Part shown: piece after piece, positions 40,999 to 49,307 of the stretch
How the letters are laid out: the number at the start of each line of letters is the position of its first letter
Position numbering within the stretch: the first letter of the stretch is position 1
Assembly: GCA_028534125.1 (NCBI GenBank)
Contig: CM052849.1
Coordinates: 496,001-560,000 of the forward strand
Reading direction: 5' to 3'
Length of the DNA: 64,000 bases
Source of the DNA: Lama glama
Lineage: Eukaryota
Notes under the pieces: generated by a model
Databases searched by the model: none
What the model saw: only the letters and a program-made list of their open reading frames with translations
Told to the model about the DNA's origin: nothing
Program-made: the position numbers and the translations under genes

Positions 40999-41929
<931 letters not shown>

Positions 41930-43332: not shown

Positions 43333-43832
43333 NNNNNNNNNNNNNNNNNNNNNNNNNNNNNNNNNNNNNNNNNNNNNNNNNNNNNNNNNNNNNNNNNNNN
43401 NNNNNNNNNNNNNNNNNNNNNNNNNNNNNNNNNNNNNNNNNNNNNNNNNNNNNNNNNNNNNNNNNNNNNNNNNNNNNNNNNNNNNNNNNNNNNNNNNNNN
43501 NNNNNNNNNNNNNNNNNNNNNNNNNNNNNNNNNNNNNNNNNNNNNNNNNNNNNNNNNNNNNNNNNNNNNNNNNNNNNNNNNNNNNNNNNNNNNNNNNNNN
43601 NNNNNNNNNNNNNNNNNNNNNNNNNNNNNNNNNNNNNNNNNNNNNNNNNNNNNNNNNNNNNNNNNNNNNNNNNNNNNNNNNNNNNNNNNNNNNNNNNNNN
43701 NNNNNNNNNNNNNNNNNNNNNNNNNNNNNNNNNNNNNNNNNNNNNNNNNNNNNNNNNNNNNNNNNNNNNNNNNNNNNNNNNNNNNNNNNNNNNNNNNNNN
43801 NNNNNNNNNNNNNNNNNNNNNNNNNNNNNNNN
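43333..43832. other. Assembly gap (500 N) hiding TBX1 exon 4 and the 5' part of exon 5
   Basis: The T-box segment RMFP...YRY...HPDSP expected between exons 3 and 5 was not found in called sequence. Confidence 0.95.
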
Positions 43833-44909: not shown

Positions 44910-45311
<402 letters not shown>

Positions 45312-45443
45312 NNNNNNNNNNNNNNNNNNNNNNNNNNNNNNNNNNNNNNNNNNNNNNNNNNNNNNNNNNNNNNNNNNNNNNNNNNNNNNNNNNNNNNNNN
45401 NNNNNNNNNNNNNNNNNNNNNNNNNNNNNNNNNNNNNNNNNNN
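45312..45443. other. Assembly gap (132 N) hiding the TBX1 exon 3 acceptor and the expected MISAVSSPW-type alternative start
   Basis: N-run directly upstream of PGAASPG; content inferred from orthologues. Confidence 0.9.
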
Positions 45444-46471
45444 CGAGGTGAGCGCTGCCCCGCGCCCCGGGCCGAGTGGCGGGCGTGCGCCGCGCTGCGC
45501 CCCGGGGCCGCGCCGCCCCACACCGCCGCCCGCCAAGCCGCCCCGCCCCGCCCCGCCCCGCGCCCCCGCCCCCGCCGAGACAATGGCCTCCCGCGGCCCC
45601 CTCCCCCGCCCCCGCCCGCGCCCGGCCCCCCGACCGCCCGGACCGGCTCCCCCGAGCGCCCGCCGGCCGCCCCTCGCTCTGCCGCCCTCCCGCGTAGCAC
45701 TGCTCTCTCCAGGCTCCTTCCGATTCGTTATTTCCTTACCTTTGTCTTCCTCGTGCGAACCTCCCCTCCGCATCCTCTGTCCTCCCTCCACTATCTCTTT
45801 CAAGTCTCGTTATTTCTGTTTTATTTTCTGCTTCAGCCTCTTTTTCCTGCTAGTCCCTCATCGCTTTCTTTTTGGTCAGTCTGTCTTTCCCCTCATCTCT
45901 CTCTGTGCCTGTGTTATTCACGCTTTTTAACTCTTTTTTAAAAAAAATAAAAACTGCAGTCTAATTTTTTTTGGTGACTTGACTTTGTTTCTTCCATTTT
46001 CCCCACTTTCTTCTCTATCGTTCTTGCTCTCTGCTTTGTTTTTCATCTTTCCGTTTTATGGTTTTCTCTCCTTTTCTCAGTATCTTTTCTTCCCACCGCC
46101 CCCACCGTTCGCTCTTCCTTTTCCGTGTCCCACCTCAGTCCTCTCCCCATTCCTCCCACCTCTCCGAGCTCACAGCCACCTCTGCCCCCTTTCTCTGGCC
46201 TCCTCTCCTGTCCTCCACCCCCTTGCTCTCCTTATTCTGGGCCTGCGTCTAGCTGGGTGTGGGTCTCTCCGTTGGGGTCCCCAGGCTGGAGGGGGTATCC
46301 TGCCCACCCTTCCTCTCCGCCCCAGAGTCCAAGCTGGAAGCCCCATCCCACCAGTGCTCCCTCTACCCACTCTCCGCCCGGACCCTGCCAACCCTCTTTG
46401 CTTGGGCCCCACCGCAGCAGGGGCAGGGGGTCTGGCGAGAGGATCTGAGTTCACTCAGCAGGGAGGCTCAC

Positions 46472-46505
46472 CTTCCATGTCCCTGGTGACAGTGCTGAAG
46501 TGCAT
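46472..46505 (-). CDS. TBX1: TBX1 exon 2 coding part (MHFSTVTRDME); exon spans 46472-46591 when spliced from exon 1
   Basis: ATG at 46505; donor G|gtgagc at 46471; acceptor ctctctggttgcag|G at 46591; peptide matches the recalled classical human TBX1 start. Confidence 0.92.
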
Positions 46506-46655
46506 CCCGGCCGGGGATCCCAGCAGCCGGCCAAGCTTCACCCAGTTAGAGGACCCAGGGCCCAGGCGAGAGGTGCGCTCTGCGGTCTCTCCTGCAACCA
46601 GAGAGGCAATGCTGAACGCGCTGGCCCGGGGAGACAGCGGGCTCCGCGCGTCCAT
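46506..46655 (-). CDS. TBX1: Putative alternative in-frame N-terminal extension of TBX1 (50 aa, MDARSPLSPRASAFSIASLVAGETAERT...GSPAG) with eh1 motif
   Basis: ATG at 46655, exactly 150 nt upstream of the MHFST ATG, in frame, no stop. RASAFSIASLV resembles the eh1 context of TBX20/15/18/22. Confidence 0.65.
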
Positions 46656-49307
46656 AGGCGCCTGGCGGCCTGGCCGGCGCCGCCTCCGACTGCGTGCACC
46701 CAGCCCCACCAAGGCCGGCCCAGCCCACGGGCCCCGGGGGCGGGGGCCCGCGGTGCCACTCACAACCACGGCCCTGGGCCCAGGGGATTGTGGCGTCACG
46801 GCCCCCTACTCTGGGCCGGTGGCAGCCAAGGGGGCCCAGGCGGGTGGAGAGCCCTGGGCGTGTCGGCCCTCCTGCTTTTCAAGCTCCGGGCCCCTCGCCT
46901 TTGCTCCCAGGGGCCTCCATGACCAGCACCCCTTGAACCTCCTGCTGCTCCTGCCGAGGCCGGGGTTCCCTCTGTACAGCGAAGCCCTCAGCTTCTACAG
47001 CCCCCGGAGGGGAGGTGGCGACACCAGGAACTCCCAGCCCCATCCCACAGCAGCGGGGCACTGAGGAAGCTCCATGGGGCCTCGGGGCCCAGCCCTGCCC
47101 CTGCCCTCGGCTCCTCCCGCCTCCTTCTCCCCGGCTGCCCCTGCACCTGGGTGAGGAGAGGGCAGTCCGGGCTCCAGCACTGGCCACAGGCGGACGGCCC
47201 CAGGGCCACAGCGTCGTCCTTTCCTCGGCGCCCAGGGACAGGACCCAGCCCAGCAAACACCCCCCAGCCCCAGTTGGTCAGCTAACTGGCTGGGGACCCT
47301 GAGCAGAGGGACGCCGCCCAGGCCGCGCAGCCCAGGAGCCCCAGCGTCACGCGCACCCTCGCGCGCACCGCCCGCCTCTGGCCAGGACGCTTATACATCC
47401 GGAGGGTGGGCAGTGCCCGCTCCTCCGACCTCCCCACGCACCGGCCGGGGCGCAGGGAGGGCCGGGGGCGGGGCCTGGACTGGCCGAGAGAGCGAAGGAC
47501 ACGTCGGAGGAATTCAGGCCGCTGGCCGGGTCGTGTGCTGCCCCTCGCTCACCACCCACCCGGCCCGCCAGCCTGCCTGCCTGGAAAGGCCCTGTTGCCC
47601 AGTTAGGCCAAGCAGAGCAAGGCCTCTGGCCTCCAGGCCCAGGCAACCAGGATGCTAGGGCCTGACTTGGCCTGTGCCTCCCCGACCTCCTGCCTCTGGG
47701 CCTCCTCTGCCCAGTTCAGGGCATCCTTGGCCTTGCCATCCAGAGTCTCCCCAGTGGGGCTCCAAGCCTCCCTGCTCCCAGGATCCTCTCTGGCCCTGCG
47801 CTGAAGCTCTGGAAGTTAGGCCTCCACTCCAAAGCCTCTCGTAGGTTTTTGCCTGCTATTGCCTGGATCTAGATGGGAGGCAGCAGCCTCTCTCAGGGTT
47901 TTTACAACCCAGGGCCTCAGACCCCTGGCCGAGGGGGTGCTTGCTTTTGGGCAGGAAGGCCCAGGAACTGGGGACCTGGGAGTGGGCTCCCGCAGGAAGT
48001 GCCTGGCTCCCGGGCCTAGGGTCCAGTAAAGAGTCCGAGGCTGGAGTGGAGTCAGGTGAGTATGGGGGTCCTGCTGTGTGAAGGGGTGGGCGTGGGTCAC
48101 CTCATGTGCAGTGAGCCCCTGCCCCACCCCCAGGCCACAGCTGCTGCTTTGTGGACTGGGCAGGGAAAGAGGAGCTGTTGCCAGGGTACGCCCCGGGCCT
48201 GAGTGGCCGTCTGGATCTGTGACAGTGACAGCGATCTGTGGCACCCAGGGACAGGCCCAGGGAGGAGTGCCATCCTGGGACCAGCCAGGTCCCTGCTCCT
48301 CTGCCTCTAGAACCCCAGGTTGGAGCTGCGCAGGGTCCAGGAGAGCTGGGTGGAGCTGGGGGTAGTAGGTGGGAGTGGGTCATGGTGGAGCTGCAGGAGG
48401 TGAGCCCAGTGCTGGTGGTCTGTACCCAAAGAGGTGTGCAGGGCGGCCACCAGGAGTACCTGTTGCTGGTCTGCATCCACCCTGCAGGTGGCTGTGGGGT
48501 GCATGTTGTGTGCTACCTGGGATGCGTGCTGTCCCGGCACGTGGGGGTGCTGGTGGTGGTGGTGTCCTGTGCACCTGGGGAGATTTTCGTGTGTACTTGG
48601 GCGAACACGTGAAGGCAGATGTGGAGTCCACCGGTGAAACCAATATTGAGGAGAAAGAAGTGAAAGTGAAAAATCCTGGAGCTTCTGGATACTCCAGGTG
48701 AGCCTCCTGGGTCTCTGGCTGCTGTCCGGAGATCCTGGGCCCTCTGAGTCTGAGGTGGACAGGAGCGGGGTGGGGGTGGGGTGGGGCAGACCTCTCAGCC
48801 CCTCATTAACCCCTTAGTGCCTGAGCTGGGACCTGGGCAGCCAGGCTGGGTAGGGAAAAAGTGCAGAAACAGAAGGCACTCTATCTGGTGGGCAAGCTCT
48901 GGTGAGAGCACGCTGGAAGAGGTCAGGACCTCCCGCCCCCCACACAGACAGCCCTGCCTGACGGCGGCCCTGCTCCACCCACTGCAGATACTCACCCGAG
49001 GGATAGCAGAACCAGGACCTTAGGTCAATGCCCGCGCCCTGCTGGAACCCAACTGCAGGGGCCCAAAGGGGCCCGAAGTGCAAGGCTGAGTCTCCAGCCC
49101 GGCCTGGCCTGGGTGTCGCTGCTTCCCCCACCTCTGGGGGTGCACTCCTTGGTCCCTCCTGGAGGCTGCTCCACTGGGCTCCTCGCCGCCTGCCCCTGCC
49201 CTAACCCTGGTGCCCGTGCCCACAGGGAGCGCGTGCCAGGTGGTCCCGTGTCGCACACACCCCGTCCGCGCGTGCCGCCGCCTGAGTAGGAAGCCTTCCT
49301 TCCTCAC

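Follow-up and report, generated by a model that had tools for sequence, protein, structure and literature searches.

A conserved eh1-type motif upstream of the customary TBX1 start codon: evidence for a probable ancestral first coding segment whose ATG and motif the usual splice removes

Introduction

Several T-box factors of the Tbx1 subfamily contact co-repressors of the Groucho/TLE family without an adaptor. TBX15, TBX18, TBX22 and the C. elegans protein MLS-1 bind Groucho/TLE/UNC-37 directly through an N-terminal engrailed homology 1 (eh1) motif (PMC3154951, PMC6071992), and in mouse TBX20 the F18L/S19I change abolishes TLE binding and is embryonic lethal (PMC10629681). TBX1 itself, a gene of heart and face development, is described by Miller and Okkema (2011) as reaching Groucho indirectly, through Ripply (PMC3154951). 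Here we analyze a stretch of 64,000 nucleotides from the llama, Lama glama (contig CM052849.1, positions 496,001 to 560,000 of the forward strand; henceforth the window, numbered from its first letter), whose minus strand carries TBX1, and we argue that the segment 46655-46506, lying directly before the customary TBX1 start codon, is probably the ancestral first coding segment of the gene and would supply TBX1 with an eh1 motif of its own.

A preliminary description of this DNA, made from its letters alone, had started from the premise that standard TBX1 lacks an eh1 motif and uses Ripply3 to reach Groucho, and the literature bears this out (PMC1310626, PMC3154951, PMC6176997). The Ripply3 route and the isoform considered here would be alike in outcome, in that TBX1 becomes a TLE-dependent repressor (PMC3154951, PMC6176997 for Ripply3; by analogy for the eh1 isoform). 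They differ in that Ripply3 is a separate adaptor of restricted expression (pharyngeal endoderm in the mouse), whereas the eh1 isoform would carry its own handle.

Results

An open frame with an eh1-type heptad leads into the customary TBX1 start

Translations of the open reading frames (ORFs) on the minus strand of the window contain MHFSTVTRDME, the proline-rich exon, the T-box exons and a TBX1C-type tail of TBX1; its membership of the Tbx1 subfamily follows from these T-box exons and from the PF00907 domain carried by the database matches named TBX1. The locus is of non-human, laurasiatherian type, and by comparison of translations the ORF is nearest to the bat and carnivore versions. Fifty sense codons, MDARSPLSPRASAFSIASLVAGETAERTSRLGPGSSNWVKLGRLLGSPAG, run from ATG 46655 in frame with ATG 46505, the start of MHFSTVTRDME, and they include the heptad FSIASLV, which satisfies the eh1 core type F-x-I-x-x-I/L-L, where F precedes a small polar residue, I or V, two free positions and a pair of aliphatic residues. 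On re-reading the sequence, the positions previously given for ATG 46655, for the 50-codon frame into MHFST and for FSIASLV proved exact. The elements concerned are the following (a slash marks a splice junction here and below).

46655-46653, minus strand: start ATG of the putative eh1 isoform, in the context gcgcctATGg, with a pyrimidine (C) at -3 and G at +4.
46593-46655, minus strand: codons 1-21, MDARSPLSPRASAFSIASLVA, the block containing the eh1 motif, conserved in placentals and other chordates.
46616-46596, minus strand: eh1 core heptad FSIASLV, TTC AGC ATT GCC TCT CTG GTT.
46506-46592, minus strand: linker, codons 22-50, fast-evolving in alignments with its frame kept; 5′ untranslated region (5′UTR) in transcripts that start at MHFST.
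46472-46505, minus strand: customary TBX1 start (ATG at 46505-46503), with the remainder of MHFSTVTRDME after it and then base one of a split codon; without variation across the placental ORFs.
46472/46471, minus strand: splice donor G/gt, the gt at 46471-46470.
46808-46806, minus strand: TAG, the nearest upstream in-frame stop, which bounds the ORF.

A 50-codon open frame is in itself weak evidence, because the G+C content of the DNA around it is 68-71%, at which long stop-free stretches are common. The regular expression F[ST][IV]xx[IL][LIMV] has three matches in the six frames of the 64-kb window, against a rough expectation of about one for so bare a pattern, and FSIASLV is the only one of the three that adjoins a gene start.

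The N-terminal block is conserved from amphioxus to placentals

An exhaustive HMMER search with a 62-residue exon piece returned full-length TBX1 models together with more distant ORFs, and a second, region-limited search took a parrot TBX1 isoform as its query; the N-termini of the matches were then inspected. Across the 31 taxa sampled, which range from amphioxus and sharks to placentals and take in a marsupial, birds, turtles, an alligator, a lizard, frogs, coelacanth, gar, sturgeon, bichir, teleosts, sharks, rays and Branchiostoma, annotated TBX1 models begin with M-D-x-x-SPLSP(K/R)A(N/S)AFSIASL(I/V), that is, with M-D/E-x-x-SPLSPKANAFSIASLIS, the first Met being present in 31/31. The block of 18 residues SPLSPKANAFSIASLISA is identical in the amphioxus TBX1-like protein (the N-terminus of Branchiostoma belcheri reads MEANSPLSPKANAFSIASLISASEQ...), the sole placental departures from the chordate block being K>R, N>S and I>V. 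Within the core, F14, A17 and L19 are found in 31/31 taxa, S15 in 30/31 and I16 in 29/31; the heptad is FSIASLI in most vertebrates and in amphioxus, and FSIASLV in the window. In all 31 taxa the models then continue, in frame, through 45-77 linker residues to MH[FY]S.VTR[DE]ME, so that a core kept in 29-31 of 31 taxa stands beside a linker that drifts in both length and sequence. Selection on the protein is the only explanation for an unchanged 18-mer that has held its place in this gene for more than 500 million years. Conservation of the ATG, the frame and FSI in other vertebrates, which had been set beforehand as a test, thus extends beyond mammals to amphioxus.

Three departures in or near the core were seen. 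The ray Narcine (P0105) reads ATAFRIASLIS, with Ser>Arg in the core, the sawshark Pristiophorus (P0107) reads SALSRKANAFSIASLIS, with a change in or beside the core, and two bichirs and a hake have FSVASLI. A Pfam scan of the 62-residue piece gave only a sub-threshold chance match (Inovirus_G7P, 14.5 bits against a cut-off of 27), and an ESM Atlas query with amphioxus residues 1-30 gave no usable match.

Start codon and frame are kept among placentals

For placentals, a word search with the ORF, scored on residues 49-114 only, gave 17 ORFs of 75-88% identity, with sources that include Saguinus, Alexandromys, Ovis and Logan or ENA assemblies. These 17 ORFs of other species all retain the start codon, frame and motif (alignment A1); in that alignment MDARSPLSPRASAFSIASLVAAE and MHFSTVTRDME are invariant or nearly so and the first Met is invariant. 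Among 19 distinct 61-residue placental ORFs, variable columns number 3/21 in codons 1-21, 21/29 in the linker and 0/11 in MHFSTVTRDME (codons 1-21 versus linker, Fisher P = 5.5e-5). Conservation collapses beyond the donor. Before the ATG, the translated frames differ between species, and their divergence directly upstream of it implies frame-shifting indels there. Annotated full-length models with the eh1 start exist for rodents, carnivores, bats, pangolin and gibbon. At codon 22 (46590-46592) the window has Gly (GGA) where every other placental ORF has Ala (GCA), and it is with the altered base that the usual exon 2 opens, directly after the acceptor AG described below.

At the DNA level we compared three mammals, namely the window and two sequences from a metagenome scan (alignment A2): L002, which is bovine-type, with 37 residues identical to those of a Bos mutus model, and L001, which is closest to feliform carnivores; neither is primate-like. 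Only one indel, of 9 nucleotides, falls between the ATG and the donor. The 200 nucleotides upstream of the ATG contain five indels, of 1, 10, 1, 1 and 2 nucleotides, none a multiple of three, despite high identity. In codons 1-21 each pair of these three DNAs, a thin sample of close species, shows 1-2 synonymous differences and one non-synonymous difference, the latter always at codon 5. The segment thus has the marks of a coding extension: start and frame are kept, the frame-shifting indels in these DNAs lie outside it, and it is present in a spliced bird mRNA, to which we now turn.

The extended isoform is annotated in rodents and present in a spliced bird transcript

Mouse NP_001360867.1 (isoform 4, 529 residues) equals the 479-residue MHFST isoform plus 50 residues, its N-terminus MDARSPLSARASAFSIASLVAAE...MHFSTVTRDME having the same 50-residue offset as the window; its T-box (PF00907) occupies residues 151-336, which leaves the motif, at residues 14-20, outside the DNA-binding domain. 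Rat NP_001402633.1 (isoform 1, 530 residues) also begins with the block, as do many XP_ TBX1 isoforms found by cluster look-up. These isoforms are orthologous to the window ORF and are known as database records alone. The preliminary description had guessed that computationally predicted isoforms with such an extension might exist, which is correct and understated, since mouse and rat have NP_ RefSeq isoforms. Its word "hidden" is apt for the literature; for the databases it does not hold. In the open literature that we searched, from which most subscription journals are absent, there was no description of the TBX1 eh1 motif or of the extended isoform, whether by peptide or as NP_001360867.

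An anatid-type bird contributes a 584-residue uninterrupted ORF (P0073) on a Logan contig of 2283 nucleotides, from a cluster of 14 sequences, which spans the eh1 start, MHFST, AISSPWLTQ and the whole T-box. As the TBX1 gene has many introns and this ORF is uninterrupted, the contig must derive from spliced mRNA. In the window's own lineage, five RNA-labelled runs from two studies contain 0.66-0.69 of 29 sampled words of 46440-46760, and a sixth, X13, from a third study, contains 0.45. Exon 2 alone could account for at most 0.31, and exon 2 with the included piece of intron 2 for 0.42. A share of 0.66 exceeds what exon 2 can give and hence requires sequence past the ATG, of which pre-mRNA or DNA carry-over may be the source.

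The customary acceptor is embedded in the eh1 codons

The usual 5′ splice was located by mapping the Bos mutus model P0037 (XP_014336109.1) on L002, where the exon 1 donor is CGG G/gtctgg and the acceptor is ggttgcag/CAGAGG. In alignment A2 the bovine acceptor falls on ttgcag/ of the window, inside codons 20-22, and the pyrimidine tract and AG of this acceptor come from the eh1 codons themselves. The usual splice from exon 1 to exon 2 therefore removes both the ATG and the eh1 motif, which come to lie in the intron 1, of about 440 nucleotides, of the usual transcript, with the linker in its 5′UTR. The exon boundary at 46591 proposed earlier is thereby borne out. Two bird isoforms, P0079 and P0081, use the junction seen in the bovine model (Oxyura X2, MESPK/VAAAAE; Cuculus X2 likewise), so the arrangement seems, on the basis of automatic models, to predate the bird-mammal split. 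The corresponding features of the window are these.

46597-46592, minus strand: acceptor ttgcag/ of the customary exon 2, the exon running from 46591 (bovine model mapping and alignment A2).
46656-46860, minus strand: conserved non-coding DNA upstream of the ATG (alignment A2), intron 1 of the usual transcript.
47143-47286, minus strand: counterpart of the bovine non-coding exon 1, by tblastn of P0037 against the window.
44950-45311, minus strand: next TBX1 coding exon, its ends approximate, reaching the start of the T-box at ...MIVTKAGR.

The conserved DNA at 46656-46860 is a candidate 5′UTR or promoter of the eh1 isoform, and its part 46656-46800 contains no ATG. Further upstream of the eh1 ATG, before the exon 1 region is reached, lie ATGs at 46920, 47043 and 47075 (minus strand), opening short ORFs of 13, 54 and 26 codons, which would matter for a transcript that retained intron 1. 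The window lacks a GT at the position aligned with the bovine exon 1 donor G/gtctgg (gggatgggg, at about 47040-47100, against L002:835-850), so its species must use another exon 1 donor, perhaps the conserved cccag/gtgcag further upstream. Two models, P0037 and P0021 (Dipodomys, XP_012886956.1), extend an open frame backwards from the TBX1 start, into exon 1 or to a point far upstream; their upstream parts look like over-extended predictions in G+C-rich 5′ sequence, as they are not conserved and the window has a stop there.

A third N-terminal variant (P0038, P0043, P0073 and P0101), found in birds, teleosts and sharks, joins exon 2 to an earlier acceptor and so adds AISSPWLTQLSHFCDVA before AFT.... 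The mouse 488-residue isoform begins inside this piece, at MISAVSSPWLTQ. Exonic stretches of the window are N-masked at 41218-41373, 43333-43832 and 45312-45443, the last being the 5′ part of the next coding exon, into which the AISSPWLTQLSHFCDVA piece would fall. A regular expression for the alternative start MISAVSSPWLTQ had no match in the window; elsewhere this start adjoins the exon whose 5′ part is masked here.

The motif resembles that of TBX20 in sequence and position

Among the described systems TBX20 is closest. Its sequence was translated by hand from the donor oligonucleotide printed for the Tbx20 EH1 knock-in (MEFTASPKPQLSSRANAFSIAALMSSGG; PMC10629681), with which the TBX20 context quoted in the preliminary description, LSSRANAFSIAALM, agrees. 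By hand comparison the TBX1 flanks and core in the vertebrate consensus are identical to mouse TBX20 residues 9-26 at 11/18 positions, including the F and the S changed in the TBX20 mutant. Both proteins belong to the same T-box subfamily and have the motif within their first 25 residues (14-20 in TBX1, 18-24 in TBX20), and the TBX20 context, LSSRANAFSIAALMSS, is nearly that of TBX1, LSPKANAFSIASLISA in the vertebrate consensus and LSPRASAFSIASLVAG in the window. The flanks of TBX15/18/22 and MLS-1 are probably less like those of TBX1 than TBX20's are. Where TBX1 and TBX20 part is in usage: the TBX20 motif is constitutive and a proven direct binder of TLE1/3, whereas the putative TBX1 motif is optional and spliced out in the usual 5′ splice. 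TBX20 proteins did not appear at E <= 10 in the region-limited search with the parrot TBX1 isoform.

Discussion

We favor the explanation, at a probability of roughly three in four, that 46655-46506 is a real ancestral first coding segment of TBX1, that an isoform bearing the eh1 motif is made from it, and that this isoform docks TLE by analogy with TBX20. The earlier proposal that TBX1 has kept an ancestral eh1 motif in sequence usually treated as intron or 5′UTR thus gains support, with respect to ancestry and coding status, from chordate-wide conservation and the mapped acceptor; the refuting conditions set for it beforehand were, as far as they were run, all answered in its favor. In the proposed mechanism, transcripts that start in, or retain, the usual intron 1 would carry a 5′-extended exon 2, and translation from ATG 46655, the use of which in mammals we infer, would yield TBX1 with about 50 additional N-terminal residues, of which residues 14-20, FSIASLV, would form the eh1 short linear motif. 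This peptide would dock into the WD40 domain of Groucho/TLE as the TBX20 motif is taken to do, so that the eh1 isoform would repress intrinsically, independent of the Ripply3 adaptor, and could act where Ripply3 is absent. In the usual mRNA, by comparison, the upstream non-coding exon would be spliced to the acceptor in codons 20-22 and translation would begin at Met51 (MHFST), giving a protein without eh1; more generally, eh1-less proteins would come from any transcript that splices from exon 1 or has a more downstream start. The choice of promoter or splice would therefore set whether TBX1 has a co-repressor handle of its own, and the overlap of acceptor and motif may by this reasoning serve as a promoter/splice "switch".

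As for how the motif acts, we read the TBX1 and TBX20 motifs, on their sequence resemblance, as one homologous module of the Tbx1/Tbx20 lineage. Since the motif, its flanks and its distance from the N-terminus match those of TBX20, the extended TBX1 most likely binds TLE directly. It is also conceivable, position -3 being C for the first ATG and G for the second, that a single mRNA yields both proteins by leaky scanning, although this is speculation.

Several observations weigh against this explanation. The protein matches were ascertained for an intact frame, and the evidence outside mammals consists mostly of automatic gene models. A spliced mammalian transcript with the extension was not found in Logan, the mammalian support being NCBI models and contigs, and the searched open literature holds no binding or repression data on the eh1 isoform. 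The Kozak context is weak at the eh1 ATG, with C at -3, whereas the MHFST ATG has G there. Among the three mammals compared, the linker shows about 10 non-synonymous against 3-4 synonymous differences per pair, a roughly neutral ratio, and the 200 nucleotides upstream of the ATG are about as conserved in DNA as the motif block; DNA identity between close species therefore does not by itself prove coding, and conservation of the upstream non-coding DNA fits a promoter or 5′UTR. Finally, in P0034, an 87-residue ORF on an NCBI contig of 614 nucleotides, the frame is broken on either side of the motif. This ORF is primate-like and retains RASAFSIASLVAAEAAERTAHQGSGSSDRVKLRWLP, with a tail similar to what intron 2 reads as when translated on the opposite strand, and it is either a chimeric small contig or from a lineage with a disrupted ORF.

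Some of these points would suit a relic in placentals, whereby the segment was coding in the chordate ancestor and remains so in fishes, frogs and sauropsids but is no longer usefully translated in placentals, its sequence being held by a double role as branch-point, pyrimidine-tract, acceptor, promoter or 5′UTR DNA. The usual splice does take out the ATG and the motif, whose codons provide the pyrimidine-rich tract and the AG, and the weak Kozak context, the near-neutral linker, the equally conserved upstream DNA and the lack of a spliced mammalian contig all point the same way. We nevertheless consider such a relic unlikely. Normal splice signals do not reach as far as codons 1-13 or the ATG, which stands 64 nucleotides before the AG, yet both are nearly invariant in primates, rodents, carnivores, bats, ungulates and pangolin; no placental ORF seen has lost the frame to MHFST, the 9-nucleotide indel being the only one, while frame-shifting indels begin immediately upstream of the ATG. 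Moreover, K>R, N>S and I>V, the placental substitutions, are of a conservative kind that leaves the eh1 consensus intact, and the isoform has NP_ RefSeq records in mouse and rat.

Less probable still is that the extension is translated but that its motif is no Groucho/TLE handle, serving instead as a degron or as the site of another partner, or being masked in the full protein. Eh1-like peptides are indeed short and low-scoring (PMC1310626), and according to a 2026 preprint (PMC13308096) eh1 factors are connected with regulated degradation. Against this stand the 11/18 match to the proven TLE motif of TBX20, which takes in the F and S at which mutation destroys binding, the similar position in the protein, and a core nearly invariant for more than 500 million years. 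That a chance open frame should hold a chance eh1-like heptad might have been entertained on the ground that stop-free stretches are common at about 70% G+C and that the bare pattern occurs three times in the window where about one match is expected. However, an 18-residue block that is identical between amphioxus and vertebrates, and found at the same gene position in 31 taxa, refutes it, and we give this account practically no weight.

A bolder form of the favored explanation, to which we lend only tentative credence and on which we would not bet at even odds, holds that the eh1 form is the ancestral and still functional principal TBX1/10 of chordates, and that the embedded acceptor, common to birds and mammals, is an ancient promoter/splice switch between a TLE-dependent repressor sufficient in itself and an eh1-less activator. 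If this were true, two decades of TBX1 assays would have been performed on N-terminally truncated complementary DNAs (cDNAs), and this segment would lie behind part of the unexplained Ripply3-independent repression by TBX1 and would hold some of the 5′ variants taken for "non-coding" in 22q11-like phenotypes.

What is new here is the recognition of the motif, of its age and of the splice arrangement that removes it; the isoform sequence was already in RefSeq. TBX1 thereby joins the eh1-bearing T-box factors as a hitherto unrecognized member, with a function that we assign by analogy. TBX1 is the main dosage-sensitive gene of the 22q11.2 deletion syndrome and both activates and represses, and its mode of repression is unsettled; a conserved isoform with a TBX20-type eh1 motif would offer a direct, testable answer to how it represses. 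The cDNAs used in most functional work, which start at MHFST or MISAVSS, would then omit a functional module, and variants in about 150 base pairs now classed as intron or 5′UTR could be coding changes.
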